Part shown: positions 36,539 through 63,870 of the stretch, piece after piece
Layout: every line of letters starts with the position of its first letter
Position numbering within the stretch: the stretch's first letter is position 1
Sequence record: NC_025447.1
Length of the DNA: 64,000 nt
Direction: 5' to 3' (one strand)
The notes under the pieces: generated by a model
Databases searched by the model: none
What the model was told of the DNA's origin: nothing
The model's input: the letters and a program-made list of their open reading frames with translations, nothing else
Made by a program: the position numbers and the translations under genes

Positions 36539-36781
36539 ATGAAAGTACTATCTGAATTAGAAATGCATAATAGATTATACAAGTACTACCATTTACTTAA
36601 ACCTATACAGAGGATTAAGTGTCCCTTTGAAGTGAAACAGGTTTTAATTTATGAGCATAAGTTCTTTGTATCATTAGGTACGAACCATCAAGAGTACTTT
36701 TTGAAGTTGTACTTGATTACATTAATAGATTTAATTCACTATAAAACCAAACAAGCTAATAAAGAGAAATATGAAAACTAA
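36539..36781 (+). CDS. Family B small protein
   Basis: GTNHQE; start corrected. Confidence 0.8.
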   Translation: MKVLSELEMHNRLYKYYHLLKPIQRIKCPFEVKQVLIYEHKFFVSLGTNHQEYFLKLYLITLIDLIHYKTKQANKEKYEN

Positions 36782-37112
36782 AATTCAACTCAGGGTATAC
36801 ATATCGTATGAAAATATATACGTTAAAAGTAGTCTATGTAAAGATGTAATGGACTACAAAGGTAAACCATTCACAGTTACTTACAGTTTAACAGGAGGTT
36901 TATATATCTCTTTTGCTAATTACGAAAATAATATGTACGAACACATTGACATTGAAGATTTAAGTACTTTATCACCAGAGGAATACTTTCAGGAATCATT
37001 AGTATGGGATTTAGAGTTTCCTATGCCATTAGTACATAAGATGATAGTACTAATGAAAGAATCTAAACAGGAGCCTAATGGTGATTATGAAGAACACATT
37101 ATTGAGTATTAA
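36771..37112 (+). CDS. Family C protein
   Basis: EEYFQESLVWD. Confidence 0.75.
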   Translation: MKTKIQLRVYISYENIYVKSSLCKDVMDYKGKPFTVTYSLTGGLYISFANYENNMYEHIDIEDLSTLSPEEYFQESLVWDLEFPMPLVHKMIVLMKESKQEPNGDYEEHIIEY

Positions 37113-37144
37113 GAGTTCTGATAGTACTGATAGTACAAATGTTC

Positions 37145-37173
37145 TTGACAGTACTTTTCATTACTGATATAGT
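37145..37173 (+). promoter_or_regulatory. sigma70-type promoter
   Basis: TTGACA-17-TATAGT with TGn extension. Confidence 0.7.
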
Positions 37174-37202
37174 GCACCAACGTTAATCATAGGGTACAGA
37201 TT

Positions 37203-37448
37203 ATGTTAAAATTTTTAAATTTCCTTATCGTCTTGTGTATTGTTCTTGGAATTGCACCGTTTGTATTAGCGTATCTGGATTCAGATGAAATGCAGAAGAT
37301 GAATTGCACAAAGACAGGACAGAGTAGAGAAGAGACGGTTATGATGCCTGTAACGGTTATTGTGAATAACATACCAATTACGAACATGATTCCTACCCTA
37401 ACGACAACGTACCAGTACTCTTGTACAGATGGAGAGAGGTGGAGATGA
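37203..37448 (+). CDS. Small membrane-anchored protein
   Basis: N-terminal TM FLNFLIVLCIVLGIAPFVLA; two further Cys in the C-domain. Confidence 0.7.
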   Translation: MLKFLNFLIVLCIVLGIAPFVLAYLDSDEMQKMNCTKTGQSREETVMMPVTVIVNNIPITNMIPTLTTTYQYSCTDGERWR

Positions 37449-37765
37449 AATTTAATATAGCAAAAACATCGAATGTATGTATATTTGGTTATGCAGATGA
37501 GTTAGGTGATATTGACATTCTTTTGTACAAAAAGGATGGTGTTATGCATTTCAAGTACCAGGATGAAGAGGCAGACAATTATCCTTTACCTAATTTAGTA
37601 CAAATGCAGGAAGAGGAATTATTCCAGTACAGCTTAGTATATGACATTGATATTTGCACGATGCCAGTACTAATTAATATTCAAAAAGTGATGCTCGATG
37701 TGTTTGATAGGCTAATACAAGGCACACAAGGAAGAACCATATATGTCAATGTACAAGACAATTAA
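37445..37765 (+). CDS. Family C protein
   Basis: EEELFQYSLVYD; start corrected. Confidence 0.75.
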   Translation: MKFNIAKTSNVCIFGYADELGDIDILLYKKDGVMHFKYQDEEADNYPLPNLVQMQEEELFQYSLVYDIDICTMPVLINIQKVMLDVFDRLIQGTQGRTIYVNVQDN

Positions 37766-37958
37766 TCAAGAATGGAAGACCCAAAAGTACAGGGAATTCA
37801 GTACTAGTTTAACAAAAGATGCATTGAATTTAAAAAGAACAGAGTTTGATATGTTTATTTTTCTTGGAACACGTTCACAGGAACAATACATTCATTATTA
37901 TATAAGTTCATTGCGAACGGAGATCGTATGCAAAACACAGGGTATTATAAAAAAGTAA
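37743..37958 (+). CDS. Family B small protein
   Basis: GTRSQE. Confidence 0.75.
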   Translation: MSMYKTINQEWKTQKYREFSTSLTKDALNLKRTEFDMFIFLGTRSQEQYIHYYISSLRTEIVCKTQGIIKK

Positions 37959-38194
37959 ACCAATATTTGTACGCTACAAAGTACAGGGATTTTTGTTTAA
38001 AGGGTGGTGATGAAGATTTTTCTTTGCGATTATCAGAATTTAATCTGTTATTTTATCTTGGTACATCGGAACAAGAAGAAATGGCACAGAAATTTATCAA
38101 GCACCTTGAACAAAAAATTCATATGCAAATTTTGATGCTTAAGGTACATAATGAGATAAACAAATATGAACCCAACAATAGTACAGGATCTTAA
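37928..38194 (+). CDS. Family B small protein
   Basis: GTSEQE. Confidence 0.75.
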   Translation: MQNTGYYKKVNQYLYATKYRDFCLKGGDEDFSLRLSEFNLLFYLGTSEQEEMAQKFIKHLEQKIHMQILMLKVHNEINKYEPNNSTGS

Positions 38195-38892: not shown

Positions 38893-38900
38893 GGCAAATT

Positions 38901-39446
38901 ATGAATGATATAGAATTATTAGCACACAAGATTAGTACAATAATGCTTATCCTCAATAACAACCATCCTATATCGAAGATAGATGGAATCCTGAGTCAGA
39001 GGACAGGTGGTAGTTTATATTTGACATTAACAGAGGTTATCGCAAGGAATTACATTGATATTGAAATCGAGAACAGTGATGCATCAGGAAAGGTTGATGT
39101 AGGTGCATTAATCAGTTCAAATCCAGTATCAGCATCCCCATTGACCAAAGGTGTTAGTACAGGATTCGAAGGGTATTTGTGGTACAATACCAATGATGAT
39201 TATTTTATATATCAGCATTCCAATACAAATTATGATGAAGACAAATTTCAGTTCATAGACCCTTATGATGAAGCTGAAGTATTTCAAAAATCATTAATCA
39301 CAAAACCGCATGAGATGATGTATCTAATGTTATTCAGTACAATGCATTTGAATCCATTAATTAAAGGTTTAAAATTTTATATTCAATTGAATTTAGTCCA
39401 TGTAGTTTATGATTTATTAATGCAAGGATATAGTTATGAAGTATAA
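38901..39446 (+). CDS. Family C protein
   Basis: EAEVFQKSLI. Confidence 0.75.
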   Translation: MNDIELLAHKISTIMLILNNNHPISKIDGILSQRTGGSLYLTLTEVIARNYIDIEIENSDASGKVDVGALISSNPVSASPLTKGVSTGFEGYLWYNTNDDYFIYQHSNTNYDEDKFQFIDPYDEAEVFQKSLITKPHEMMYLMLFSTMHLNPLIKGLKFYIQLNLVHVVYDLLMQGYSYEV

Positions 39447-39753
39447 AATGCTTAATACAGTATCAGGGGTATATGTAGAATTAGAATCCGATTATTCAGA
39501 TGGATGGAATTTTATTAAACGACACGATAGAAATACATGGTACATGGCACATTTGGATAATGACGTAATAATAGATAATTTTGTCGATTTTAATACATTA
39601 TCAGAAGAAGAATTTTTCCAAATGCAATTTGTGCTTGATACAAATGGATTTGATTTGCTATTATTAAGGAATATTCAGAAAGCGGTTAATGAATTCATAA
39701 TCCAAAATAATTCAGGTAAAATGGGGATGTTCCATGATCTGGAAGTACAATGA
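39436..39753 (+). CDS. Family C protein
   Basis: EEEFFQMQFVLD. Confidence 0.75.
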   Translation: MKYKMLNTVSGVYVELESDYSDGWNFIKRHDRNTWYMAHLDNDVIIDNFVDFNTLSEEEFFQMQFVLDTNGFDLLLLRNIQKAVNEFIIQNNSGKMGMFHDLEVQ

Positions 39754-40291
39754 AATTCAGTACACCTACGCTAATGCAATCCTTATGGGACAAAAGTTAG
39801 CTTGTATTGTTGCAGCCTTATATAATGCCCAGAAATATCACAAGCGTCATTTCCACAAATGTATTGGTATTATTCCATCGAAGTACAATACATATATTGC
39901 GTGCACGAGTCATTTTGATAAACGATTCAATACACCTGATACCCCAAATGCCAGTAGTGTTATTGGTCTTTTGGATTTCGCACCTGGTGCTGTTATTGGA
40001 AAGAATGATTTAGAGTACACATGGTATAATAAAAATGCCCCGTTAGTAATGGTAAAATATGATACAGAAACGAATAAAACAATAGAGTACAATACATATA
40101 AATCAGAGGAAGAATTTTTCCAAGGTTCATTGCTTGTGCCAGTGCGTTTGTTGTTTTATAATGTCCTTATTAGTACAGTACACAATAGTCCATTACACAA
40201 GAATCACAAAATTAATTTCAATTTTTGTGCTTATGCGATTGATGGTGTGTATGAGTGTTTAATGGAGGTATTGAGTTATGAAGCTGAATAA
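39734..40291 (+). CDS. Family C protein
   Basis: EEEFFQGSLL; similar to 38901. Confidence 0.75.
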   Translation: MIWKYNEIQYTYANAILMGQKLACIVAALYNAQKYHKRHFHKCIGIIPSKYNTYIACTSHFDKRFNTPDTPNASSVIGLLDFAPGAVIGKNDLEYTWYNKNAPLVMVKYDTETNKTIEYNTYKSEEEFFQGSLLVPVRLLFYNVLISTVHNSPLHKNHKINFNFCAYAIDGVYECLMEVLSYEAE

Positions 40292-40619
40292 TACATTTGA
40301 TATTAATAAGTTAAGAGAATGGTTTTATAGTATTGAAATTGAAGCCATCCCGTATCATAGATATGAACAATATAATTTAACCAGTATTGATATCAGTGAG
40401 TTGTACGCGTATTATCAAAGTGCATTAGAGATGCATAAGTTATTTTTGAGTACAGATTTTGTTCTAAATTACAATTTTGAGGAATTTAATAATTATAATT
40501 TAGTACAGAAATATGTAGTAGCAAAGTATATGTACCTTCAAGGAATTACAAGTAATTTGGAATTCAATACAGTCCTTGCTTTAGTTGAGGTAATTTTATG
40601 CAGTACATGTATGATTTAG
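40278..40619 (+). CDS. Hypothetical protein
   Basis: GGAGG RBS. Confidence 0.65.
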   Translation: MKLNNTFDINKLREWFYSIEIEAIPYHRYEQYNLTSIDISELYAYYQSALEMHKLFLSTDFVLNYNFEEFNNYNLVQKYVVAKYMYLQGITSNLEFNTVLALVEVILCSTCMI

Positions 40620-41104
40620 AGTTCAGCTTAGATGCTGCATTTAAATATGTTCACAAGATAGAAACAATATACAGTACATTATGTGCAATACAATCAGTAT
40701 CATCTGAGTTTGATGTTGGTGAAAAATATCAGGTATGGAATAATACATTTCTAAACAAAGAACGTTGCTCTACGGGGTTTAATATTTTAACATTTAATCC
40801 CAGCAATTGTTACCCAGAGAAGCATGAACGTTATCCGAATGACGACATGTGGTTTGATTACACAAAAGATGGTGATATGTCATCCCTTGTAGTTCCTGAT
40901 GATTTTAATGCCGAAGATTTAACGGAAGAGTGGTGGTTTCAACAGAATTTAGTACACGATGATATTGATTTATTTTTTTATGTAGTATTTAAAATGCTTT
41001 ACCACAACAATATATTAAAAGATAGTGTGTTTTTTTCATGTCTATATATTGATGATTTGTACAATGAAATCCAAATCAACATTCCCAGCACGCCTGTATC
41101 GTAA
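40598..41104 (+). CDS. Family C protein
   Basis: EEWWFQQNLVHD. Confidence 0.75.
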   Translation: MQYMYDLEFSLDAAFKYVHKIETIYSTLCAIQSVSSEFDVGEKYQVWNNTFLNKERCSTGFNILTFNPSNCYPEKHERYPNDDMWFDYTKDGDMSSLVVPDDFNAEDLTEEWWFQQNLVHDDIDLFFYVVFKMLYHNNILKDSVFFSCLYIDDLYNEIQINIPSTPVS

Positions 41105-41129
41105 GATATGGGCTTTTTTCGTTTTGGTA

Positions 41130-41158
41130 TTGACAAAGAAGTGCAAAGCTGTTATCAT
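41130..41158 (+). promoter_or_regulatory. sigma70-type promoter
   Basis: TTGACA-17-TATCAT with TGn. Confidence 0.7.
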
Positions 41159-41186: not shown

Positions 41187-41687
41187 GTGAGTTTCATAAT
41201 CCCAAGTACATACGAAGATGCATCAAGTGCAGTTCATAAGATTCATTATATTTTTAATTTAATTATTAGATCTGCAAAAATTAAAATGTATGCACCTCTT
41301 GTGACAAATAATCGAAATGAAGAAATTTTTATTAGCACAGACAAAATTATTTTTCCATATTTCAATGAAGATAGATTGTGGTTCATACATTTAGCTGCAT
41401 TACAAAAATATAAGATGTCAATTCGTAATAATTTGGTTATACCGTTATATCATCCCGATATTGGAGAGGATGAGTATTTTCAGTACAGCACAGTACACCA
41501 CCATGAAGATATCTTTGCTGCTATGCTTATTGCTAAATTGAACACCGTTGATTTGGAGCAGTACAAATACAATAATAAATCATGTAAGATCATAATCCCT
41601 GCATTCATAGCTCTTTATGATTATGTGGTGCATAACAAAAAAGATGATACATATGCTTTCAATGAAGAGTATTTGAATTTTTTTTAA
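41187..41687 (+). CDS. Family C protein
   Basis: GTG start after AAGGAG; EDEYFQYSTVH. Confidence 0.75.
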   Translation: MSFIIPSTYEDASSAVHKIHYIFNLIIRSAKIKMYAPLVTNNRNEEIFISTDKIIFPYFNEDRLWFIHLAALQKYKMSIRNNLVIPLYHPDIGEDEYFQYSTVHHHEDIFAAMLIAKLNTVDLEQYKYNNKSCKIIIPAFIALYDYVVHNKKDDTYAFNEEYLNFF

Positions 41688-41696
41688 GGAGAACAT

Positions 41697-42224
41697 ATGA
41701 GCAGTGACGTGCAGAAATCAATGACATTCAATGAAATTGGTGCATTTAAAGATAAGATCATTGATTGTCTTGAATACATGATTTGTAGTAATATCGAAAG
41801 TATCGAGATATTTAACAAGACAAATCGCTCTTACCATATGATGTACATTGCAAACAATAATGGTATCATTCCATTTATTTCGGATAGTACAATATGGTAC
41901 GCATGTGATACGAAAAAAACCACAATAGGTTTACATTTATTTGAGACACATTATGATCTAATTATTCCTGAACATTGTATGCAAGAAGAAGAATATTTTC
42001 AAATGCAATGTATACATTCACCATTAGTGTTGTTTAGTTTATATATTATACCTTATATCACCAAATGTGTTCATGAGAATAAAGCTCCGTGGAATCATGA
42101 ATTTGTATCGTTGAAGTTATTGTATAATGTATTAGTAGAATATTATGATTACAGGCACAATGGTACAATCAGTGATGTATGGGATTTTGAATCGCTAAGG
42201 GTGAAAACATACACAGGTGAATGA
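41697..42224 (+). CDS. Family C protein
   Basis: EEEYFQMQCIH. Confidence 0.75.
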   Translation: MSSDVQKSMTFNEIGAFKDKIIDCLEYMICSNIESIEIFNKTNRSYHMMYIANNNGIIPFISDSTIWYACDTKKTTIGLHLFETHYDLIIPEHCMQEEEYFQMQCIHSPLVLFSLYIIPYITKCVHENKAPWNHEFVSLKLLYNVLVEYYDYRHNGTISDVWDFESLRVKTYTGE

Positions 42225-42840
42225 TATGACCAGAATTAAAATGTATGATTTGATGCAGTACAGTAAAATTGCCATTCCAGTGCTTAATAAAGTGCTGGAT
42301 GCATTCATTGCCAAATACCCTGAGAATTCAGTGTTATGTATTCCATTTAGTGTTCCAGATAAAGATGATATATTCCAAGTGAATGTCAGTACACGTGGTA
42401 TTACATTGCAGCAGAAATACATGGATACGGAATATTATGGAATAAAGTTGGATTCAGTACAGGGTTCAAAATCAGCCTATGATTTTTTTGTTCCTAATAA
42501 TATAGAGTCATGGGAAACAAACATTTCAAAGAAAGATGAAAATGATGTTCCTATTAGTGGTGTGTTCAACAATAAAGTTTTTTATTATTACGAAACCGAC
42601 AAATTCCCTGAAGAGTTATATTACAATTCAGAAATGAGTGAGGATATAGATGCATTCATGTTTCAATTATCTTTAGTACATGATATCATTGATGTTCAAG
42701 AGTTAAGAGCAGAAATCAATTTAGCTAAAGAGTTATCGGACATGCTGCCACCGTTTAGTATGCTTTTTTGTGAAGGAGGTTATTTTTCAAAAGAAGTGTT
42801 TGAACATTTCGTAGATGTTGTAAAAGGGTTGGATATATAG
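42217..42840 (+). CDS. Family C protein
   Basis: DAFMFQLSLVHD. Confidence 0.75.
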   Translation: MNDMTRIKMYDLMQYSKIAIPVLNKVLDAFIAKYPENSVLCIPFSVPDKDDIFQVNVSTRGITLQQKYMDTEYYGIKLDSVQGSKSAYDFFVPNNIESWETNISKKDENDVPISGVFNNKVFYYYETDKFPEELYYNSEMSEDIDAFMFQLSLVHDIIDVQELRAEINLAKELSDMLPPFSMLFCEGGYFSKEVFEHFVDVVKGLDI

Positions 42841-43045: not shown

Positions 43046-43561
43046 ATGCATCAACACAAGCATCATTCATATGATTTTGCAATTAACATTATGAAGTTCA
43101 TTCGAGCGTTGGAGGATGGGAAGCTTAGTCATAAGTACAGGAAAGAGGGTAACAATTGGTTCAGAAATGATTCCGAGTTCAGTTGTCATAAAATCGTGTA
43201 TAGTAATCAGTACAGTGCCAATTACCTACAAGATGTAGTGATGTGTTTTGAATACGTGTTGCAGTTCAGGGGTTCAATCCAAGATGAGTTGATGGAGAAC
43301 ATGTACATCCGATACCTTCCAATGCTCAAAGATGAAAATGTATTATTAAATTCAATATACCAACGAGTTCGTGAAATTGAGTGCAGGGATATATTAGATA
43401 CAGAAGAATCGTATTTCCAGCATTCCCTGATTTATTCACCTGATTTATTACAGGTACATAATTTGTTTAATACATTACGTCAGAACATCAGTACAGACAT
43501 ATTTTTGTCATTATCGGATTATGATACATTTGTCAAAGATTTAGAGGAAATAGGTTTATGA
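43046..43561 (+). CDS. Family C protein
   Basis: EESYFQHSLIY. Confidence 0.75.
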   Translation: MHQHKHHSYDFAINIMKFIRALEDGKLSHKYRKEGNNWFRNDSEFSCHKIVYSNQYSANYLQDVVMCFEYVLQFRGSIQDELMENMYIRYLPMLKDENVLLNSIYQRVREIECRDILDTEESYFQHSLIYSPDLLQVHNLFNTLRQNISTDIFLSLSDYDTFVKDLEEIGL

Positions 43562-43899
43562 GTCGATTTTCGGTTTGTGTGGTAAACATAAAAAGTGATG
43601 GTAGTTTAATTGAATTAGATGTATATGATGATGATAATGCATATGGTATTAAAGTACAGGACAATGATGTGCAGTTCAGTTCAAGAACAAATTTTGAAAA
43701 TCCAGTCCAAGTTCCTAATTTCATAGAAGATGAAGCAGCACGTTTCCAATACGAAACGGCATATGACAATGTACATATGCATATTATTATGCAACAAAGT
43801 TTAGTTCAATTAGTTCCTTTGTTCAGACAAAATATATATGTACATGAATTGTCGATCAATGACGTTCGCAGTTCCGTATTGTTCGATACAAATATGTAA
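43558..43899 (+). CDS. Family C protein
   Basis: EAARFQYETAYD. Confidence 0.7.
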   Translation: MSRFSVCVVNIKSDGSLIELDVYDDDNAYGIKVQDNDVQFSSRTNFENPVQVPNFIEDEAARFQYETAYDNVHMHIIMQQSLVQLVPLFRQNIYVHELSINDVRSSVLFDTNM

Positions 43900-43909: not shown

Positions 43910-44461
43910 ATGAGTTCAATGAGTTTATTAGATACATTAGAAAAAGACAGAAGTGCAATTAAGCGTTTAAAAGAGCAAGTACAAAAGATTGTATACAACG
44001 TTGATAAGTTTGAAGTCCCAGGAAGATTTGGTGATATTTCCCATACGGAGATCAAATCCCTTAAGTCAGATTTGTTGATTAAAAATAAAAATGGGTTGAT
44101 TTTAGTTTTGAGTTCAGATATGATGGGGGCAACACATAGTTATAATGCAGTATCGGTGCGTTCCGAGTGTGAAGGTATATATCTATCACAGGGTTTCAAT
44201 AGCGAGACACAGGTTTGTTTTTGTGATGCAGTACATGATCCTATGAAGTTCACGAGAAGTGAAGCCCAAGCGTTATTAGAGCTATCAGACGAGAGTTTGT
44301 TTCAGTACAGTACAATGTATGACAATGATAAGCTTCGTTGTATGTACGCTGTAAAGCATTATACACAGGAGTTTTCTGGATTTGCATACCTTTTAGTTAG
44401 AACCAATACCAGATATATTGATATGTTAGAAGATTACATCGATAAAGTTGTTAATGTATGA
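43910..44461 (+). CDS. Family C protein
   Basis: DESLFQYSTMYD; start corrected. Confidence 0.75.
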   Translation: MSSMSLLDTLEKDRSAIKRLKEQVQKIVYNVDKFEVPGRFGDISHTEIKSLKSDLLIKNKNGLILVLSSDMMGATHSYNAVSVRSECEGIYLSQGFNSETQVCFCDAVHDPMKFTRSEAQALLELSDESLFQYSTMYDNDKLRCMYAVKHYTQEFSGFAYLLVRTNTRYIDMLEDYIDKVVNV

Positions 44462-55013: not shown

Positions 55014-55341
55014 TGGTACTGAATACTTTGTTTCAAGATATGTAATCAGACACAATCATTATGTAACCTATATTCCAGAATACAATCAATTTTATATCCA
55101 GATTTATCAAGACAATGGAAAGATAAATGATATATATTCAGAAATAAAAATCCCTGATTATAGTACTTTATCAGAAGAGGAATTGTTTCAGCAGAGCACT
55201 ATCAGTACTGAAGATGTGTACAAAATAATGGAATACCAGAAGGTACTTAAATATTTTCATGAAGTACAGGATATACAAATAGATATTCTTACTGCGTGGA
55301 GTTATATCACACACGAGGTAAATTATGTTCGAAATGATTAA
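55006..55341 (+). CDS. Family C protein
   Basis: EEELFQQSTI; start corrected. Confidence 0.75.
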   Translation: MTDGTEYFVSRYVIRHNHYVTYIPEYNQFYIQIYQDNGKINDIYSEIKIPDYSTLSEEELFQQSTISTEDVYKIMEYQKVLKYFHEVQDIQIDILTAWSYITHEVNYVRND

Positions 55342-55738
55342 AATTATGCAACGATGTGTTGTTGACCAACACGGGATATATGGATATCGTTTAAGTGCTC
55401 CTATTGACAAAAATAAAACAACCTATGTAAGCTATAATGCTGTACAAGGATTTGATATATTCATTAGTACTAATTATCAAATCAATCAAGCTAAAGATGT
55501 GTCTATAATGACCCCTGATGAGTTATTTCAGTACAGCTTAGTCTTTCCTTCATGTATCGATTTACAACGTCTAGGAGCGATACAGAAGGTTTTACGCGAA
55601 CATAAAGTACAACCCAATAAAGTCACACACATTCCAGAAACAATCTTCAAAACCATAGAAGTAGAAACTCCTGATTATATGTTAAGTGATGATGAGTACT
55701 ACGAGAAACACTTCCCTGGTAAAGTTTGGAGAGATTGA
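55325..55738 (+). CDS. Family C protein
   Basis: DELFQYSLVF. Confidence 0.75.
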   Translation: MFEMIKIMQRCVVDQHGIYGYRLSAPIDKNKTTYVSYNAVQGFDIFISTNYQINQAKDVSIMTPDELFQYSLVFPSCIDLQRLGAIQKVLREHKVQPNKVTHIPETIFKTIEVETPDYMLSDDEYYEKHFPGKVWRD

Positions 55739-56229
55739 TGAACCGAAAGTACAGAGAAACTATGAAGTTCGCTAGGGAGTGTTTAGAAGTGTTTGAGTTC
55801 ATCAATGCTCATAAAGATTTACTCCATAGATACATTGCAATCAGTGAGACAGATGACCATAGGTACATATGTTCTCGAATTCAAGATAAGATATATAAGA
55901 TTGTGTTCTCGGAAACATACACAGATACATCTAATTCACTATATGATTTTGCACGTACTGATTACGTTTCATACAAATCTTGGTCTGATAGTATTAAAAT
56001 TGTGCACAAGCAAAATACATTTTATTCTTTTCTTACGGACATTTCCGAAGAAAGTTACTTTCAAAACAGTTTAATTTATACAGAAAAAGAACTCAAAATG
56101 TTATATATTATGTCGTACTTTAAAAAGTACTGCAAATTTAATACATTATCTTTTGAGATTTCTGCAATGAAAGTATTCATTAAAAATGTAAAAGAACTAA
56201 AGAGGGCTTTTAATGTACATAGAAAATGA
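55738..56229 (+). CDS. Family C protein
   Basis: EESYFQNSLIY. Confidence 0.75.
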   Translation: MNRKYRETMKFARECLEVFEFINAHKDLLHRYIAISETDDHRYICSRIQDKIYKIVFSETYTDTSNSLYDFARTDYVSYKSWSDSIKIVHKQNTFYSFLTDISEESYFQNSLIYTEKELKMLYIMSYFKKYCKFNTLSFEISAMKVFIKNVKELKRAFNVHRK

Positions 56230-56755
56230 GAATGTAAAATGCATTACTGAAATTTGTATAAAATTAATGAAAATTTTCATTAACCCAAAATACAAAAAAC
56301 GTTCATTACATCATAATATTGATGAGCATTGTACCATTAATATACTAGGTAGTATTCTTGATGTAAAATATGATGGTAGAATGTTATTTGGCATAAGAGA
56401 AGAGAAAATAGATGATGCATTCTTTTCCTGTAAAGATAAATTTGAACCTTCTGATTATAAAGTAATTATTCGTGATGATAGCATCTACATTAGTAGTGAT
56501 TATTCAAATTACTTCGATAAAATATACAATGAAAACGTTGACTACCATTATGAAATGATAGATTTACCAGTAACAGACATTGATATGGAGAGAATCAAAT
56601 TTTCATTATCAGATAATGAGTACTTAGGTATACAAACATATTATTCACTACAAGGAAAGATTCCACCTGCTATGTATATAAGGATTGAGATTGGTAATGT
56701 ATTCAATGATAAGGTTATATCTATTGCTGATAAAATATTGAGGGTTGAATTATGA
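56213..56755 (+). CDS. Hypothetical protein
   Basis: 180 aa ORF in operon. Confidence 0.7.
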   Translation: MYIENENVKCITEICIKLMKIFINPKYKKRSLHHNIDEHCTINILGSILDVKYDGRMLFGIREEKIDDAFFSCKDKFEPSDYKVIIRDDSIYISSDYSNYFDKIYNENVDYHYEMIDLPVTDIDMERIKFSLSDNEYLGIQTYYSLQGKIPPAMYIRIEIGNVFNDKVISIADKILRVEL

Positions 56756-57315
56756 ATATCAATGATTACCAATTTCATAGGCTTGAATTTCGTCATTGTG
56801 TTGCATTTGCAAAAACATTGATGTGCATCATTGACACTCTTTCATCCAAACAATTTCGTAAGGATAATGATTTATTTCTGAAAAAAGGTCGTGTAACATC
56901 AACCGATATCGGTATTGAACTATTTGTTGATATCAGTGTTGATACCGGAGACAGTACAAGGGTTGGTTGTATAGGTCATATTGGTACACATTGCTTCACA
57001 TGGAATCCAAATACAAGTCAAGTACGAGTTGATTATAGAAATTCACGTTGGGTTGATCTTAGTACTGAATCAGATTTAGAATCAGCTATGTTCCAGCTAA
57101 GTTTAATTCACAATCCTAATGAACTTCTTTACATTATTACTTTCAGTTATCTGTTACAAAACTACGATAATCCATCAGGATTTTTCATAGAATCAGATAT
57201 AGATGAAATTATGGAAGAGATTCCCAGTTTAAAGAATATTCTCGAAGAAAAAGATTTCTATGAAGACTTCAGAGATTTATACGACATGCACTTGGAGTTA
57301 TTTAAGAATGGATAA
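56752..57315 (+). CDS. Family C protein
   Basis: ESAMFQLSLIH. Confidence 0.75.
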   Translation: MNINDYQFHRLEFRHCVAFAKTLMCIIDTLSSKQFRKDNDLFLKKGRVTSTDIGIELFVDISVDTGDSTRVGCIGHIGTHCFTWNPNTSQVRVDYRNSRWVDLSTESDLESAMFQLSLIHNPNELLYIITFSYLLQNYDNPSGFFIESDIDEIMEEIPSLKNILEEKDFYEDFRDLYDMHLELFKNG

Positions 57316-57826
57316 AGATGATATTCTAATTAGACTAATTAATAGTTTAATAAAGTTCTCAAATAATGATGTCGATACATACAAAGTGGGGGATATTGAA
57401 TTTAAATCATTTGGTATGTACGGTGAGGATAAAACATATTATGCGTCAATGAAATTTCAAGATTTTCACGAGATGTTAATATCGTTATCATATGAAGATG
57501 TTGATCCAAGATGGAGTTCCAGTATTTCACTATCGAGAATGGTAATTCGTAGTAAGCATCGTTATATTTCGTCAAAGAATACTCCTAACTTGATTAATAT
57601 TGTGTTGAATGAAAATACAAATCCCCTATCTAAACATGATATCGTACCGTTAACCGATGAAGTTCTTTTTCAATTGAGTACCATTTGTGATGAAGATGTG
57701 ATATCATGTATGAAAATTTATGAGAAGGTTGGGAGTGATATTCCCATGAACTATTACCTAACTATAGATGGAACGTACCTTCGAGATGAGGTTCTAGCGT
57801 ACATTGACAGTGTTTTACCAAAATAA
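57308..57826 (+). CDS. Family C protein
   Basis: DEVLFQLSTICD; start corrected. Confidence 0.75.
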   Translation: MDKDDILIRLINSLIKFSNNDVDTYKVGDIEFKSFGMYGEDKTYYASMKFQDFHEMLISLSYEDVDPRWSSSISLSRMVIRSKHRYISSKNTPNLINIVLNENTNPLSKHDIVPLTDEVLFQLSTICDEDVISCMKIYEKVGSDIPMNYYLTIDGTYLRDEVLAYIDSVLPK

Positions 57827-57886
57827 AGACCCGTATGGGTCTTTTTGTGTTTATGGCTTTACAAGAGCATTCAGGTGTGTTATACT
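57825..57886 (+). terminator. Intrinsic terminator followed by sigma70-type promoter
   Basis: AAAGACCC-GTAT-GGGTCTTT-TT; then TTTACA-17-TATACT at 57858-57886. Confidence 0.75.
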
Positions 57887-57913
57887 TGATTTTAACTAGA
57901 GTTGGAGGAATCT

Positions 57914-58480
57914 ATGAGTACTGAATTAATTAAAGAAGTCACATTACTTCTGAAGCATTGTTTTAAGTTCATTCCTGATACTGGCTCACGCCAGTACATT
58001 AAAGTTAATGAGAAATATAACATCAATATCCTTGTATCTGAAACTGCGAGCAGTTATGCTAACATTGAGTTGGATTCTGAAGAAAAATATACAGTATTAC
58101 AAATCATAGCAGATGTACAACGTAAACAAGATTATCGTTCTTCATTTTACAACGATTATCTGTGCGTTTGCTCAAACTTCAGTGAGAATAAAATTGTGTA
58201 TAAGAATTTATACACACATGAAGTGATTGATACATATAATTATAAAATTTCATCTGATGAATACAATGTTCTAATGTTCAACGCAAACCTTTTGTATGAT
58301 GCCAGTACTGTACGCTGTTTAGAGTTAGCATATAAAATTCCAAAGATCATGGAAAGAAAAGATTTGATTCACTTTAAAACAATTTTAAAATACAGTACAA
58401 AAGAATTAGAGGATTTAGTACAGGCTCTTAAGAATTTCATTAATGAACATGTACCTGTTAAATTCGAGGATGCACAATGA
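57914..58480 (+). CDS. Hypothetical protein, possible divergent family C
   Basis: GGAGG RBS; VLMFNANLLYD. Confidence 0.7.
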   Translation: MSTELIKEVTLLLKHCFKFIPDTGSRQYIKVNEKYNINILVSETASSYANIELDSEEKYTVLQIIADVQRKQDYRSSFYNDYLCVCSNFSENKIVYKNLYTHEVIDTYNYKISSDEYNVLMFNANLLYDASTVRCLELAYKIPKIMERKDLIHFKTILKYSTKELEDLVQALKNFINEHVPVKFEDAQ

Positions 58481-59061
58481 ACCATATCAGAACTAAAATT
58501 TTGAGACTCATGCATGACATTGCAGAACTTTCAGAGATTCATGACATTACGGAAATTGTTGAATTTGATAATTATCGACTGAAAATTGAAAACAAATCCA
58601 AACATCGTTTTGGTTCAGTTCAGTTGGATGTATATAAAACTTATGAATTTTCTAAAAAAATTAAAAGTTCATGGGATACGATTACTATGTACATTCGCAC
58701 ATCCAGAAATCGTGAACGTATTGGTTCTATTTCTTCTAATATGGTATTTGCGAATGCATTACATGAAAAAATGAATAAAATTGTAGAATCTGATTTCAGT
58801 GAAGATGATGGTTTTATTGGGTTGGATGTTCCACCAGAATTAGACCAAAGTGAAGATATTCGAGATGCATTCATTTTCCAGAAATCATTGTTGGACAATT
58901 ACAAAGAATTCGAGTACTTAATGCTTTGTTACGATACTGCAAAAATTCTTGATTGTGGTGAACTAGTTATGTACAATGATTTTATCAATTGCAAGACTGA
59001 TGTTCTGAATACACTACTTCAAAATATAGAATCTGTTAAGGAAAAATATGAACGCTTATAG
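58477..59061 (+). CDS. Family C protein
   Basis: DAFIFQKSLLD. Confidence 0.75.
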   Translation: MNHIRTKILRLMHDIAELSEIHDITEIVEFDNYRLKIENKSKHRFGSVQLDVYKTYEFSKKIKSSWDTITMYIRTSRNRERIGSISSNMVFANALHEKMNKIVESDFSEDDGFIGLDVPPELDQSEDIRDAFIFQKSLLDNYKEFEYLMLCYDTAKILDCGELVMYNDFINCKTDVLNTLLQNIESVKEKYERL

Positions 59062-59629
59062 TTATATGACAGAACGCCATCAGTTATTATATGATATCAG
59101 TAAAAAAATGCTATCAATTGTTGGTAGTGCGAAAGAAATTGAAAAACAATATCTCATCCGTGATGTAGCAATTTCATCTAAATGTTGGTCAAATGAATAT
59201 TACGACCACGGTATTCTTACTATTTCTGGGGCTAGAAATATTTGTATTGTAAAAAATAAAAGTAAAAGTAATGAAGAGTGTGAGATTAGAACCGATATAC
59301 AAATTAAGGATGATGGAAGTTTTTCACACCACCCATTCCATATTAGTACTATTGGTGTTTTATATAATATTAAAGTACTATTCGGTGATGAAGAGTATGT
59401 GTTAAAAGCTATCAATCCAGATTCAAGTACAGTTGAAGAAGAACTGTTCCAGATGAGCACTGTTATACCTGAAGAGGTTCTTAGTACTGTTGTTTTTTGT
59501 AGTTTAATTTATCATACATACAAAAAGAACCAATTCGATTTCCACATTTTAGGAACGTACATCTTCAATACTTTGAATGTTGATCGTTTAAAAGCATTAA
59601 ATGCAGCAATGGATAAGGTGCTACAATGA
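59048..59629 (+). CDS. Family C protein
   Basis: EEELFQMSTVI. Confidence 0.75.
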   Translation: MNAYSYMTERHQLLYDISKKMLSIVGSAKEIEKQYLIRDVAISSKCWSNEYYDHGILTISGARNICIVKNKSKSNEECEIRTDIQIKDDGSFSHHPFHISTIGVLYNIKVLFGDEEYVLKAINPDSSTVEEELFQMSTVIPEEVLSTVVFCSLIYHTYKKNQFDFHILGTYIFNTLNVDRLKALNAAMDKVLQ

Positions 59630-60054
59630 CAAGAGATGATTGTTTGTACATATGGGATATAATTGAAACTACACTTTCAAATCCAGAAAATTATAAAACA
59701 AAAAAAAGACAACGACACAAAATATGGATAGATTTGTTCGTTGAGGGCATACACGCAGTGACTATTTGGGATTCACCGAGGGCATCAGCATCTACTCTAT
59801 TGGACAATGAATGCATTGATTGCATTAATTCCACTTTTCATCTCTACGGTACTACATTTTTCGGTACATTTCTGGATATTGAAAGTAAAGATGATATTGA
59901 TTCACTTGCGTTACAATACCAAGTACTGTATAATACTAAATTAATTTACGATTTAGTACTAGCTTCTTATGTGTATAAATTAATGATGAAATATAATCAT
60001 ATTTCTGTTTCAGTTTATACTAAGGATATTCTTTCATTAAGAGACAAAACATGA
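59626..60054 (+). CDS. Hypothetical protein, possible divergent family C
   Basis: DSLALQYQVLYN. Confidence 0.65.
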   Translation: MTRDDCLYIWDIIETTLSNPENYKTKKRQRHKIWIDLFVEGIHAVTIWDSPRASASTLLDNECIDCINSTFHLYGTTFFGTFLDIESKDDIDSLALQYQVLYNTKLIYDLVLASYVYKLMMKYNHISVSVYTKDILSLRDKT

Positions 60055-60560
60055 GTTTATTAAATGCACGCGAATTAGTTGAGATGTATGAGATTTTGTC
60101 TTCATATAAAAATTCTCATGGAGATGTGATTCTCGACAAAAAGTTCCATGTCAGTGTTGAACATATATCAAATATAGATATGATTTCTTTGGTGGAAAGT
60201 AATAAGTCAGGTCTTGAACGCGATATCATGCGTTTGATTTATATTCCCAAACCATCATATACTAATGATAGTTCAATTAGTAATGAGACATTCATGTATA
60301 GTCCTGGTACGGATTCTACTATAGTATCGCTGTCCAATAAATCAATGGGTACTTTCCAATTCATCTATACCAGTACTGATAACATTGAAGAAATTGAATT
60401 TCAAAACAATACATTAAGTCCATGTAGTAGTGTTATAACCTTTATGTCATATCTATGGTCAACTAAAACAAGTGCTGTTGTATATAGTTCAAATTATACA
60501 CAAGATAGTATTGTTGAATCATATAAAGTTCTAAAGGAATACTATGAAAATAACAAATGA
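60051..60560 (+). CDS. Family C protein
   Basis: EEIEFQNNTL. Confidence 0.7.
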   Translation: MSLLNARELVEMYEILSSYKNSHGDVILDKKFHVSVEHISNIDMISLVESNKSGLERDIMRLIYIPKPSYTNDSSISNETFMYSPGTDSTIVSLSNKSMGTFQFIYTSTDNIEEIEFQNNTLSPCSSVITFMSYLWSTKTSAVVYSSNYTQDSIVESYKVLKEYYENNK

Positions 60561-61125
60561 TTTTATTAAAAGTGTAGTACACCCTATGCTTAGTATTATG
60601 AAAAAAATACAGAATCTACCGGAAGATAACGATTACAAGTTTAATCGTTTTGATTCAGATGTGTTTTGTATTGAAATTGAAATTAATAACAATCGCAATT
60701 TACATTTAAAATTCAAAGAATCGTCAAGTCCGTACTACAACTTTGATATGAATTTTAAAATAGATACTGACATTGAAGAAAACGTAATATCAAATCATAC
60801 TAGCAAAAATGGTTTTATGCATAGAACTACTATGTACAATAATAAAAATAGTATTATATCTAAATGGAATCATCAATTCACTAAAATTTGTGAAATTGAA
60901 TATAGTGATTTTGGTGAAGAGAATTACTTTCAGTTAAGTACAATTCATGAACTTCCACCGTATGATTATGTTAAAACATGGTTTGATATTCATAATATAA
61001 TTGATGATGCAATCAAACTTCCTTTTGGTGTGTCAATATCATATACTGCTCCTAAAACATTTGTTTTTACTGAAGATATGATTATGAAAAAGATATGGGC
61101 AATTATCCCACTTATGATGGATTAA
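60544..61125 (+). CDS. Family C protein
   Basis: EENYFQLSTIHE. Confidence 0.75.
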   Translation: MKITNDFIKSVVHPMLSIMKKIQNLPEDNDYKFNRFDSDVFCIEIEINNNRNLHLKFKESSSPYYNFDMNFKIDTDIEENVISNHTSKNGFMHRTTMYNNKNSIISKWNHQFTKICEIEYSDFGEENYFQLSTIHELPPYDYVKTWFDIHNIIDDAIKLPFGVSISYTAPKTFVFTEDMIMKKIWAIIPLMMD

Positions 61126-61130
61126 ATTCG

Positions 61131-61168
61131 TACCAGGGGTTGACTCTGGTATTTTTGTATGATACATT
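61131..61168 (+). terminator. Terminator overlapping the -35 of the next promoter
   Basis: TACCAGGG-GTTGA-CTCTGGTA-TTTTT; TTGACT-17-TACATT. Confidence 0.7.
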
Positions 61169-61186
61169 GTCCTAAAGGAGAATTTT

Positions 61187-61738
61187 ATGAACTACAATCA
61201 TGATCTTTTTACATTATGTGCATCCAAATGTGTTGATGGATGGACAGATAAAATCAATACCATAATTCATCGATATCTGGTCTTTAGTTCTCGTGCACGA
61301 AGTGAGGGGGCTATGGATTTCAAATATACACTATCTATTGATGGTGTAACTATCCATGCAGACGAAGAACGTCTGAGCATTAATTTGTATGATTCATGTG
61401 TATTTGCTATTCACCAAAAGATGGGGAAAGGATGGGGTTGTAATAACATTAACTCAAAAGCTATCTTTTGGGTTGGTCACCACCAGACAGTACTTGATCC
61501 TTCAATCAAATCTAATCTTTTATCCGATAATATGGTTTATGATTTATTGTACTCCGAAGAACAACATTTTCAGTTAAGTACATTACATGATCTGGCACAG
61601 TACGAGGATTGTTACAAAACATTAGAACTATGCCATTCCCTTGAACTTAAAGATAAATTGATACAAGTTTACCCTTCATTCTTTCATGAAGAAGTACAAA
61701 GTACACTAGATCATATTTTATATGGATACGATAAATGA
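61187..61738 (+). CDS. Family C protein
   Basis: EEQHFQLSTLHD; AAGGAG RBS. Confidence 0.75.
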   Translation: MNYNHDLFTLCASKCVDGWTDKINTIIHRYLVFSSRARSEGAMDFKYTLSIDGVTIHADEERLSINLYDSCVFAIHQKMGKGWGCNNINSKAIFWVGHHQTVLDPSIKSNLLSDNMVYDLLYSEEQHFQLSTLHDLAQYEDCYKTLELCHSLELKDKLIQVYPSFFHEEVQSTLDHILYGYDK

Positions 61739-62337
61739 GAAAAAGTTATCAAGAAGCTATTGACTTAATTCGTGAAGTTATCAAGGTGGCTCCTGCTGCT
61801 ATTGAGTTCAAGAAGTCCATATACAAGAAGTATGGTTCAATGTCGAGTATGTGCTTTCAAAAGAAACGTAGAGCATTCACTACCCAGTACTGGAATGATT
61901 CTATCATCCTGAGCAATGAGACTCAGCGTATTTTAACACTAGAATCTGAACCTAATGAGTACGGGGAAGGGAACATTTGTGTACCTGATTATGATGAAAT
62001 TAACTTCAACTGCGGTGATTTTGAAACAACATTATTACTTCATGAGGGTTATCCAGAAGGTGATGTATTAGCTGAGTACAATCCAAAAACTAAAATTCTC
62101 AAAAGAGGAATCCAGTTCACTATTAATAACAAAGATGATGTTCAAGCAGCACTGATGCAACTGAGTACAAGTGAACCTATCACTATTAGTGTAGAAGAGT
62201 TATGGGGAATTATTTCAGTACTCAATGAGTGCTACAAAGTAAAATCATTGCGTAAACACAGCATTATATTACATACCAATATGGCAAATATAAAATGTAA
62301 GCACATTCAAGAAATGGTGGTTCCAGATGGACTTTAA
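61735..62337 (+). CDS. Hypothetical protein, possible divergent family C
   Basis: QAALMQLSTS. Confidence 0.7.
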   Translation: MRKSYQEAIDLIREVIKVAPAAIEFKKSIYKKYGSMSSMCFQKKRRAFTTQYWNDSIILSNETQRILTLESEPNEYGEGNICVPDYDEINFNCGDFETTLLLHEGYPEGDVLAEYNPKTKILKRGIQFTINNKDDVQAALMQLSTSEPITISVEELWGIISVLNECYKVKSLRKHSIILHTNMANIKCKHIQEMVVPDGL

Positions 62338-62911
62338 AGAAATTGAAAGTAAATTAAAGTACTTCAAAGATATCAAACTTCTTTGGAAAAAGTATAAAGT
62401 TGATTACAATTTCAGTGATGATGAGACAATAAAATACATTGAGATTAATATCAAAATCAAGTTCAAGAATAATAATTATGGTGAAGTAACCTTAAATCAT
62501 ACTGGTATATCACTCAAGGACTATGATGGTACAACACTCGCATATTTTGACTTCACACCAGAACCAGGTGAAACACTACTTAGTGAGATAAATTCCTATG
62601 ACATGGAAGTGTTCGGCGGGAATCCGTTACTGTTCCGACTTTCTGAAGAGTGGAGTGAAGAGTACTACACTTACAAAGATGGTGTAGTACTTGACATTCA
62701 TGGAGAAGTTGTGAATGACTTGGAAGAACGTTTGTTCCAAGAATTGTGTGTTTCAAATACTTCATATGCATACAATCATATCCTTGACATGTTTGATTTA
62801 TATAGTAAAATAGATGCTGAAATGAAGGCACATGGTATTCATTACCTTACAATTAACGACTATGCTCAACTCGAAACCGCTGTGAAAGCATTGACTAAAG
62901 TACTGAAATAG
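62327..62911 (+). CDS. Family C protein
   Basis: EERLFQELCV. Confidence 0.7.
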   Translation: MDFKEIESKLKYFKDIKLLWKKYKVDYNFSDDETIKYIEINIKIKFKNNNYGEVTLNHTGISLKDYDGTTLAYFDFTPEPGETLLSEINSYDMEVFGGNPLLFRLSEEWSEEYYTYKDGVVLDIHGEVVNDLEERLFQELCVSNTSYAYNHILDMFDLYSKIDAEMKAHGIHYLTINDYAQLETAVKALTKVLK

Positions 62912-62920
62912 GAATGAAAT

Positions 62921-63334
62921 ATGAAACTGTATCATGCGAGTACTGTAAAAATTGATAACTTTTATATCCCGTATGGTGGTCTTCATATGGGAGGTAAACA
63001 CAGTGCTTTGGAAGCTGCATTACGCAAGCTGAGAAGCCCACTGAACGTAGTAGACGCATGTACAGTATACTTGCATACCTTAGAAGTTGATGTTGATAAC
63101 GTGCTTCTGTGTGAAGATTTAGGCAGTGATGATGAGTGGCGTTCACTTATTGAGAATTGCACTGCTCAAGGTTATGATGCTGTTCAGTACAAAAATGATT
63201 ACGAGCCAGACAATGTTCCTAGCTTTATGATTTGGGATGCATCTAAAGTTCGCATCATTGAAGTTGATGCTATGCATATGGATGAAGCTGAAATGATTAT
63301 CGAAGATTTTCTTGATGAATATGAAGGTGTATAA
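62921..63334 (+). CDS. Putative ADP-ribosyltransferase-fold protein (ART-PolyVal-like)
   Basis: N-terminal KLYHAS, GGLHMG..A, and C-terminal GYDAVQYKND.E...SFMIWDASKVRI; this pattern resembles small phage ART-like domains. Confidence 0.5.
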   Translation: MKLYHASTVKIDNFYIPYGGLHMGGKHSALEAALRKLRSPLNVVDACTVYLHTLEVDVDNVLLCEDLGSDDEWRSLIENCTAQGYDAVQYKNDYEPDNVPSFMIWDASKVRIIEVDAMHMDEAEMIIEDFLDEYEGV

Positions 63335-63870
63335 TGTCTGACCCGATGGTAGCACTGGCACGTACAAAATTACTATTAAAGATTGGTGAGATTTTTACGG
63401 TTCTTCTGTCCAATAATATTGATATCACTGAGCTAGATATTAAGCAACCGTGGGAAGTGACTATGTTCTCGGCGTTCCACCGATTGTCATATAAAGGTGA
63501 AAGTGTTCTTGATTTTAACCCTAAAGCAAAATTCATAGATTATGCTGCGTTGTACAGAGAGTTGCACCGAAATATTTATTCCGGTTGTATAACCAATAAC
63601 TTCAAAGAAATTAAAGTTCAAACTGCATCACATGAGTTCAATGATTTACTTTATCCAGAATTTAATCTAACGGAAGAATTACTCTTTCAGTACTCGTTAA
63701 TTCTCACAAATCTCGAAACGCTAGAGTACTACAAAGAGTTAGTAGATATTTTTATGAATACACGACTTTCAAAAGATATTGTGATATTCTGGTATACAGA
63801 GCATGTTACGGAGGAATTGCTTACTGAATTTCTTCTAAATATGACAGCTATAAAGGAGAAGTTATGTTAG
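63334..63870 (+). CDS. Family C protein
   Basis: EELLFQYSLI. Confidence 0.75.
   Translation: MSDPMVALARTKLLLKIGEIFTVLLSNNIDITELDIKQPWEVTMFSAFHRLSYKGESVLDFNPKAKFIDYAALYRELHRNIYSGCITNNFKEIKVQTASHEFNDLLYPEFNLTEELLFQYSLILTNLETLEYYKELVDIFMNTRLSKDIVIFWYTEHVTEELLTEFLLNMTAIKEKLC

Follow-up and report, generated by a model that had tools for sequence, protein, structure and literature searches.

A large tandem gene array in phage 121Q and its RaK2-like relatives encodes a family of small proteins that probably share one alpha/beta scaffold

The window analysed here, a stretch of 64,000 nt, belongs to Escherichia phage 121Q (genus Asteriusvirus, 348,532 bp; megablast, 100% identity, NC_025447.1) and corresponds to positions 124001-188000 of that record, so that a window position plus 124000 gives the record position. 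Between positions 36771 and 63870, where gene 342 starts and gene 405 ends, respectively, it holds a dense array of small genes, every one of them annotated as 'hypothetical protein', most of which encode proteins with an acidic motif around a Phe-Gln pair (E-E...F-Q-x-S) and are called the F-Q family in the following. Altogether 27 kb, or about 8% of the 348-kb genome, are devoted to this one uncharacterised protein family. The array lies entirely on the plus strand, has a G+C content of 30-35% with positive GC skew and is 97% coding; 50 of its 61 gene junctions overlap or are at most 10 nt apart, and gaps of more than 50 nt number only eight. About 15 small genes that do not belong to the family are scattered among the members. 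One further member, gene 256, is located upstream of the array, and the array itself extends about 1.3 kb past the window, where gene 408 (record 188689-189186) is also a family member.

A preliminary description made from the sequence of this stretch had counted about 44 proteins with the shared acidic F-Q motif, a figure close to the 46-47 that we find in the range (39 firm members, seven with a decayed motif and the borderline gene 402). When the translated frames of the window were searched for the strict motif core, [FYL]Q.[SA][LTVC][VILM], 37 matches were obtained in the three plus-strand frames at or after position 36771 and none before it, and four in all three minus-strand frames of the whole window. 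After shuffling the residues of 72 proteins, only 0.4 proteins on average, and three at most, carried the strict motif. A hidden Markov model (HMM) of the C-terminal module, the construction of which had been suggested in the preliminary description, converged upon iteration on 40 window proteins, namely 39 within 36771-63870 and gene 256. The E-values of this model are partly circular because it was trained on the members, and the shuffle test is the independent statistic. Even with all filters off, the genes with decayed motifs stayed in the noise of the module HMM; they were recovered by full-length profiles and by a four-phage profile that combines the 121Q members with relatives from the phages A4, RaK2 and fENko-Kae01. 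The four-phage profile added six of these genes (378, 399, 395, 398, 359 and 403), and the seventh, gene 392, joined through a BLAST match to a RaK2 member.

Across the 40 members collected by the module HMM, the Phe of the motif is found in 40/40, the following Gln in 39/40 and the Ser two positions after the Gln in 34/40. Glu occupies the columns four and three residues before the Phe in 30/40 and 27/40, respectively, and the three columns after the Ser hold Leu or Thr in 36, Val, Ile or Leu in 39 and an aromatic residue or His in 31 of the 40 proteins; Asp or Asn (26/40) also ranks among the conserved polar motif columns. The residue directly after the Gln is variable, and conservation then runs six more residues past the Gln. 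The motif with its flanks is the most conserved part of the proteins, with 2.5-2.8 bits per column compared with 0.4-1.2 elsewhere, while the mean column identity of the family is 11-17%. Annotated members inside the array are 104-204 amino acids (aa) long and mostly acidic (median isoelectric point of the family 4.8). Of the range of 104-223 aa given previously, the 223-aa protein is the outlying and basic gene 256. The Phe lies 39-67 residues from the protein end, where about 25-60 had been given as usual before.

The firm members fall into a short and a long type, for which E-values of the module HMM are given in brackets. The short type begins with the first gene of the array, gene 342 (36771-37112, 113 aa, E 1.2e-14), and gene 344 (37445-37765, 106 aa, E 1.7e-13), both carrying the strict motif, followed by gene 350 (39436-39753, 105 aa), which entered at HMM iteration 1 with an E-value of 1.6e-10. 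Genes 365 (45308-45646, 112 aa, E 1.1e-15), 368 (46235-46591, 118 aa, E 2.1e-14) and 369 (46588-46947, 119 aa, E 3.5e-13; phrog_15629) form a BLAST cluster of three, with gene 367 (45867-46235, 122 aa, E 7.9e-15) among them. The remaining short members are gene 375 (49278-49592, 104 aa, E 1.1e-8), gene 383 (52393-52755, 120 aa; phrog_13866), gene 384 (52745-53122, 125 aa, E 3.6e-16), gene 385 (53101-53442, 113 aa, E 6.1e-14), gene 389 (55006-55341, 111 aa, E 3.8e-14) and gene 390 (55325-55738, 137 aa, E 2.5e-12).

The long type is represented in the first part of the array by genes 349 (38901-39446, 181 aa, E 1.8e-14), 351 (39734-40291, 185 aa, E 7.3e-15), 353 (40598-41104, 168 aa, E 9.3e-13), 354 (41187-41687, 166 aa, E 4.5e-14), 355 (41721-42224, 167 aa, E 1.2e-14), 356 (42226-42840, 204 aa, E 1.8e-9), 358 (43046-43561, 171 aa, E 7.5e-14) and 360 (43910-44461, 183 aa, E 7.2e-15). 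Five adjacent close paralogs, which make up a BLAST cluster of five, come next: genes 370 (46957-47451, 164 aa, E 2e-19), 371 (47453-47923, 156 aa, E 4.3e-17), 372 (47920-48360, 146 aa, E 1.5e-17), 373 (48363-48851, 162 aa, E 3.7e-18) and 374 (48829-49281, 150 aa; phrog_9317). Together with the 365/368/369 cluster they bear out both subgroups named in the preliminary description. Further along lie genes 377 (49897-50346, 149 aa, E 5.1e-14), 381 (51234-51794, 186 aa, E 6.1e-14), 386 (53450-53986, 178 aa, E 4e-15), 387 (54046-54522, 158 aa, E 3.9e-16) and 388 (54519-55013, 164 aa, E 6.4e-18; phrog_12674), the last being the nearest 121Q relative of RaK2 ORF419, then genes 391 (55738-56229, 163 aa, E 7.3e-17), 393 (56752-57315, 187 aa, E 8.3e-14), 394 (57308-57826, 172 aa, E 9.2e-14), 396 (58477-59061, 194 aa, E 1.4e-11), 397 (59048-59629, 193 aa, E 3.6e-16), 400 (60586-61125, 179 aa, E 1e-13), 401 (61187-61738, 183 aa, E 1.1e-10) and, closing the range, 405 (63334-63870, 178 aa, E 1.1e-9). 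Outside the array, gene 256 (8811-9482, plus strand, 223 aa, E 4.9e-11) has Met in place of the motif Gln.

Among the members with a decayed motif, gene 378 (50346-50879, 177 aa) matched the four-phage profile over its full length with an E-value of 1.3e-8 and is 39% identical to a motif-bearing A4 member, and genes 395 (57902-58480, 192 aa, E 1.2e-4) and 399 (60051-60560, 169 aa, E 3.1e-5) matched it over nearly their full length. Gene 403 (62327-62911, 194 aa; four-phage profile E 2.9e-3) has a BLAST match of E 7e-30 to a motif-bearing A4 member. We regard as probable members gene 359 (43558-43899, 113 aa; four-phage profile E 1.2e-3), gene 392 (56213-56755, 180 aa; BLAST E 1e-6 to the RaK2 family member) and gene 398 (59626-60054, 142 aa; four-phage profile E 9e-4, BLAST E 2.5e-5 to an A4 member). 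The borderline candidate, gene 402 (61735-62337, 200 aa), is absent from the four-phage profile matches and reached E 3.2e-3 with the long-type profile in its N-terminal half only.

Gene 374 was modelled with AlphaFold from a long-type alignment of 93 sequences, and the model shows a single compact alpha/beta domain with a mean predicted local distance difference test score (pLDDT) of 91.7 and a predicted template modelling score (pTM) of 0.87. Its elements are a helix (residues 3-21), seven strands within residues 30-91, short helices at 93-97 and 103-109, a helix at 115-129 and a strand at 135-138; the motif coincides with helix 103-109 and the turn following it, in the blocks of highest pLDDT (97-98). 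The model of the short-type gene 383 (pLDDT 78.9, pTM 0.72) consists of five strands followed by two helices, the first of which (64-77) holds the entire motif, and is closed by a further strand. When the long and short alignments were compared using hhalign, they matched over 60 columns with 97% probability, pairing columns 57-117 of the long with columns 25-88 of the short type and including roughly 40 beta-strand residues that precede the motif. The two types hence have in common the motif, the helix that comes next and the last of the strands, and the short type is essentially a long type that lacks the N-terminal helix and the first few strands.

The N-terminal parts had previously been described as unrelated-looking. 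This largely holds at the level of BLAST, where they form clusters of only five, three and two sequences, and a profile iterated from the largest of these clusters stalled within the window at eight members. At the profile level, however, it does not hold for at least half of the long members. In a jackknife of the long type, the 93-row alignment was cut 15 residues before the invariant Phe, every row that BLAST linked to the tested member at E <=1 was removed, and the left-out N-terminus was scored with the rebuilt N-terminal profile against 200 shuffles. For 14 of the 27 long members z-scores of 5.4-16.8 were obtained that no shuffle matched (among them genes 349, 351, 393, 391, 386 and 377 with 5.4, 6.4, 9.2, 10.2, 15.4 and 16.8, respectively), six more reached 2.3-3.4, and gene 394 was marginal. 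Furthermore, hydrophobic positions outside the motif (L13, F25, Y36, F71 and F135 of gene 374) hold the same residue in 56-70% of the 93 long-type rows, and decayed-motif members still match the full-length profile. Inserted alignment columns number 136 in two strand blocks (145 with the intervening loop), and none fall in the motif.

Full-length relationships also emerged from a Foldseek search of BFVD, a set of models whose prediction did not depend on our alignments. The distant matches, which come from RaK2, Cronobacter phage GAP32, Serratia phage BF, Yersinia phages fHe-Yen9-03/04 and Erwinia phage pEa_SNUABM_47, span 145-200 columns at 10-18% identity with template modelling (TM) scores of up to 0.65; others are 121Q and SP27 proteins. 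A 146-aa 121Q protein, which we take to be gene 372 by its length, superimposed on the gene 374 model with a TM score of 0.85. The preliminary description had viewed the conserved C-terminal module as a kind of tag on diversified N-termini that look unrelated, and had named full-length structural homology with the motif in a core folding element as the outcome contrary to its view. For the members tested, this is the outcome obtained: the models have a single domain, the N-termini of 14-20 of the 27 long members are homologous at the profile level and the BFVD matches run over the full length. In these models the F-Q motif is the conserved core helix of one fold and not a detachable tag. The large library of diversified related proteins that had been proposed together with the tag is upheld.

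A profile search of 1.84 billion representative proteins returned only 112 clusters at E <=1e-3. All of them are 55-202 aa long with the module at the C-terminal end, so that none of the 112 places the module on another architecture, contrary to what a tag would lead one to expect. Where a source is named, it is a Klebsiella phage of the RaK2/K64-1 type or an Escherichia phage of the genus Asteriusvirus; the rest stem from metagenome contigs. We located the syntenic regions of relatives via the conserved gene 416 as an anchor and scanned them for members, detecting 42 in the divergent Asteriusvirus A4, 30 in RaK2, 19 in fENko-Kae01, four in Serratia BF and five in GAP32; in an uncultured contig, 34 of 47 open reading frames (ORFs) in 20 kb are members. 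At the array position of both BF and GAP32, about eleven genes of similar size form a block. Judged from these searches, the family is confined to RaK2-like jumbo phages, with four to five detected copies in distant genera and more than 40 in Asteriusvirus.

The array lies upstream of the same dam methylase/cytidyltransferase block in 121Q, A4, RaK2, fENko-Kae01, BF and GAP32, and in these six phages it is found between the left terminal repeat and that block. The 19,736-bp direct terminal repeat of fENko-Kae01 ends 86 nt before the first annotated array gene begins. In phage fEgEco12, whose genome termini were confirmed by restriction mapping (PMC13070987), the array is located 31-53 kb from the left end, behind a 21-kb repeat. 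The mapped left end and the start of the ~21-kb terminal repeat of fEgEco12 and vB_Ec-M-J correspond to about position 11,450 of the window, which makes it probable that the 121Q record is a permuted version of the packaged genome. A 2-kb stretch at 11195-13160 has no annotated genes.

Neighbouring array genes are in many cases more closely related to each other than to any other paralog, as expected from tandem duplication. Counterparts at the same position in 121Q and A4 have kept their order at 23-91% identity (77% for gene 354, 80% for gene 405), and adjacent genes differ sharply; the flanking anchor gene is 45% identical. This pattern speaks for paralogs that are old and were each retained individually, with mosaic exchange superimposed, and the jumps in identity between neighbours suggest a block-wise exchange of alleles within the array. 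In other Asteriusvirus genomes, 1-94% of the array is covered at the nucleotide level, in blocks of ~83% or 95-98% identity. Pairwise ratios of non-synonymous to synonymous substitution rates (dN/dS) against phage UE-S1 had a median of 0.28 across 35 family genes and reached 0.49 at most. The median of 78 neighbouring genes was 0.19, and the difference was non-significant (Mann-Whitney p 0.09). Several decayed-motif members are also under purifying selection (dN/dS 0.03-0.49). The copies are therefore real genes under purifying selection. Taken as a whole, the array shows the hallmarks of a viral multigene family: tandem paralogs near a genome end, a content that varies between isolates and maintenance by selection.

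The strongest sigma-70-like promoters and terminator-like hairpins sit in five of the eight gaps of more than 50 nt, all in plus-strand orientation. A promoter at 37145-37173, in a gap of 90 nt, agrees with the consensus hexamers at 11 of 12 positions and has an extended -10 TG; at 41092-41158 (82-nt gap), a hairpin with a 9-pair stem and T-run is followed by a promoter of the same quality (11/12 with TG). A perfect consensus promoter (12/12 with TG) is located at 53983-54012 (59-nt gap). A hairpin with an 8-pair stem and T-run precedes a promoter-like site (10/12 with TG) at 57825-57886 (75-nt gap), and a hairpin with a 9-pair stem and T-run stands alone at 61130-61152 (61-nt gap). For the corresponding region of phage CBB, its authors proposed early genes with RpoD-like promoters (PMC5259590). 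The dense operons, the sigma-70-like promoters and the site just inside the left terminal repeat suggest that the array is probably transcribed early by the host RNA polymerase.

We consider it fairly probable that the array is a tandemly duplicated family built on a single scaffold, whose single-domain products are probably early, non-virion proteins and likely serve as a repertoire of binders or inhibitors of host targets. Every copy would be a full-length paralog on one small, mostly acidic alpha/beta scaffold, which in the long type would run from an N-terminal helix through an antiparallel beta-sheet and two or three helices to a final strand. The acidic E-E...F-Q-x-S motif would form an amphipathic, N-capped helix with its turn in the middle of the scaffold, and would presumably be conserved because the fold depends on this helix. 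Sequence change and insertions concentrate in the beta-hairpin region, and a variable sheet surface would give specificity while the conserved helices frame it. The genes would be read early by the host RNA polymerase and their products left unpackaged. By analogy with other viral repertoires, these products may form an intracellular set of binders or inhibitors, non-redundant and directed at different host targets, in host take-over or counter-defence.

Several points weigh against this interpretation. The binder or inhibitor function is deduced from genomic context and by analogy with viral multigene families and acidic phage inhibitors. Just two members were modelled, on alignments that were assembled assuming full-length homology, and we infer the burial of the Phe and Gln from model confidence and conservation. 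Conservation of the motif spans all faces of the helix and consecutive residues, including the invariant Gln and two acidic positions, a pattern that a functional site could equally give. Seven of the 27 long members (256, 356, 360, 397, 400, 401 and 405) gave no N-terminal profile signal in the jackknife, and some of these could carry a different N-terminal half. Promoter-like sites are overall not enriched in the array compared with shuffles, and the promoter evidence is therefore suggestive only. Finally, gene-wide positive selection was absent from the pairwise comparison with UE-S1 (all 35 genes below 0.5), which is neutral to mildly unfavourable for the arms-race aspect.

A more far-reaching form of the binder proposal, to which we assign a rather low probability, is that each of the 40-plus copies recognises a different host protein, for example a defence system or a hub of metabolism or replication, with constant helices and a varied beta-hairpin surface; as a sub-variant, the exposed side of the acidic F-Q helix might dock all copies on one shared machine of the host or the phage. 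No larger repertoire of this sort would be known from a bacteriophage, and some of the many ORFans of RaK2-like jumbo phages could be accounted for in this way.

It appears improbable that the conserved C-terminal module is instead a docking tag through which varied N-terminal effectors all reach the same partner, for instance a scaffold, a phage loader or a hub of the host. The contrast in conservation between the motif region (2.5-2.8 bits per column) and the rest (0.4-1.2), the conservation on all faces including the polar E, E, invariant Q, S and D/N, and N-termini that are unlinked by BLAST and in 7/27 long members also at the profile level would all be expected of such a tag. The residues after the invariant Gln may also resemble the short, Gln-initiated hydrophobic peptide with which many bacterial proteins attach to the cleft of the beta sliding clamp; such a peptide would sit in a disordered terminus or loop, whereas this segment is modelled as a folded helix and turn, which speaks against the resemblance. 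Against a docking tag stand the single-domain models (pTM 0.87 and 0.72) with the motif in the helix of highest confidence rather than in a disordered tail, the homology that reaches upstream of the motif and the full-length fold matches at 10-18% identity. Furthermore, several members without the motif keep the fold profile and purifying selection (dN/dS 0.03-0.49), and among 1.84 billion representative proteins the module did not occur in any different architecture. None of the present results indicates a single common partner.

Lower still ranks an enzyme or small-ligand-binding fold in which the invariant Gln, the Ser and the acidic residues would constitute an active or binding site. The conservation of polar residues (Q 39/40, S 34/40, E 30/40 and 27/40, D/N 26/40) does go beyond what packing alone would need at 11-17% identity. 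However, a Ser, Thr or Asp followed by acidic residues at the start of a helix is ordinary helix capping, and the polar pattern of the motif fits this. No match was obtained in Pfam, NCBIfam or PDB sequence profiles that would indicate such a fold, and neither model had a significant structural counterpart in the PDB. More than forty copies of a single enzyme in a genome would be difficult to account for, and seven or eight copies lack these residues and are yet conserved between phages.

That the array proteins are virion components, either decoration or injected internal proteins, is very unlikely. In its favour, one of the 19 array members of fENko-Kae01, the terminal member ENKO_077, was flagged by liquid chromatography-tandem mass spectrometry (LC-MS/MS); by gene order and size it appears to be the counterpart of gene 408, the last array member of 121Q. 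However, that sample was just ultrafiltered and contained 220 phage proteins including polymerases, and its authors warn against structural conclusions (PMC11218385); the other 18 members were not flagged. The structural proteins of RaK2, identified from caesium chloride-purified particles, map to two other genome clusters (PMC3622015), and no array gene of RaK2 or GAP32 is annotated as structural. By the published annotation of RaK2, GAP32 and fENko-Kae01, the array proteins do not qualify as virion proteins, and their delivery with the virion is unlikely.

Least probable of all, a processing site cut by a Gln-specific protease is at odds with the position of the motif in a helix of a compact domain instead of an exposed linker, with conservation persisting six residues beyond the Gln and with no protease gene having been seen in the window or its flanks. 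The acidic-aromatic-Gln pattern bears at most a superficial resemblance to the site of the tobacco etch virus (TEV) NIa protease. An NIa-type substrate site, which would call for an accessible, unstructured segment and a small residue directly behind the Gln, was rejected, as the motif lies in a helix of the block with pLDDT 97-98, the residue after the Gln is variable and the Ser follows one position later.

Once the array is seen as a single fold, about 46 'hypothetical proteins' in each Asteriusvirus genome become one problem, as do 30 in Klebsiella phages of the RaK2 type and 34 in the uncultured contig. This view also provides definite targets for structural studies, brings together a fold without a solved relative that keeps a fixed place beside the terminal repeat across several genera, corrects the 'tag plus payload' view and indicates where specificity would reside, probably in the variable sheet. 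As these phages are under development against E. coli and Klebsiella, the role of the array bears on how they take over their hosts.

Further paralog families surround the array. A second family of at least 18 proteins (63-97 aa) occupies window positions 31706-36781, in tandem just upstream of the F-Q array, with four more copies interspersed within the array at 37749-38194 and 50857-51244; its motif, Leu-Gly-Thr ... Gln-Glu, is located ~40-58 residues in. A third family, at 7358-11194, comprises about 15 tandem genes for proteins of 60-81 aa with a similar N-terminal start and a hydrophobic C-terminal end, and gene 256 is embedded among them. On the minus strand of positions 1-7255, six ~380-aa copies (genes 242 and 244-248) are annotated as RCC1-like 'regulator of chromosome condensation', a tandem expansion interrupted by the hypothetical gene 243. 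Near the array end, the non-family gene 404 (62921-63334, 137 aa; phrog_11632, function unassigned) sits between members and has a counterpart of the same size (414 nt) at the same place in A4. The A4 array contains gene A4_379 (31131-32543 of the A4 region), a 1.4-kb gene annotated as 'methyl-accepting chemotaxis protein', whereas the 121Q array is without such a large gene. Gene A4_348 (17064-17600 of the A4 region) is annotated as 'DNA ligase' yet belongs to the F-Q family (long-type profile E 1e-25, motif present), and this annotation is probably wrong.

Comparison with known families yielded no match below E 0.01 and none near the cut-off in Pfam, only scattered single matches in NCBIfam and none at E up to 1 among PDB sequence profiles. 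Foldseek of both models against the PDB gave no significant match (best E 0.24 and 0.27, TM below 0.2). The top match of the gene 374 model, the p32/gC1qBP/MAM33 fold, resembles it in being acidic and in its order of an N-terminal helix, antiparallel strands and C-terminal helices. It differs in that there is no sequence relation and the superposition is non-significant (E 0.24, probability 0.06, TM 0.16, root-mean-square deviation 19 A), a score so far below significance that we rejected it and do not place the family there. In PHROGs, the window proteins belong to phrog_9317, 12674, 13866, 15629, 28549 and 34017 as well as phrog_34600, 38467, 33775, 30243, 35972 and 29152, with matches reaching E 1e-156 and weak cross-matches between clusters that hint at a superfamily. 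There the family is split into a dozen or more unlinked, unannotated clusters that look like unrelated ORFans, with no motif recorded and its unity and size not stated. In the literature that we searched, neither the family nor its motif is described, and only general remarks are made: about 10% of the RaK2 proteins are paralogs (PMC3622015), as are 22 CBB ORFs (PMC5259590), and variable blocks of hypothetical genes are mentioned (PMC13070987).

Among phages, the closest parallel is found in Bacillus phage G, where about 35 zinc-ribbon proteins have arisen by lineage-specific expansion (Iyer et al. 2021, PMC7824862; that paper cites 121Q for its tail hairs only). Both are cases of a jumbo phage with dozens of genes for one small domain of guessed function. 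Unlike the zinc ribbons, the F-Q family is alpha/beta, has no metal-ligand pattern, is shared across genera and keeps a fixed syntenic place. The F-Q proteins also resemble small acidic phage inhibitors, such as anti-CRISPR and anti-restriction proteins and DNA mimics, in being small and acidic, in lying in an early and variable accessory region and in lacking an enzymatic signature; unlike these, they match no solved example in sequence or structure, and we know of no inhibitor family that occurs in 40 copies per genome. Large DNA viruses carry multigene families such as MGF 110/360/505 of African swine fever virus and the ankyrin and kelch arrays of poxviruses and giant viruses. By analogy, the F-Q array resembles these in its diverged head-to-tail paralogs by a genome terminus, in a copy and allele content that differs between isolates and in products that are non-virion and presumably host-acting. 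It differs from them in its unrelated fold and sequence, its bacterial host and a gene order that is largely conserved within the genus instead of undergoing rapid gain and loss. The F-Q family is an undescribed protein family of a general kind that is known, the viral multigene expansion.

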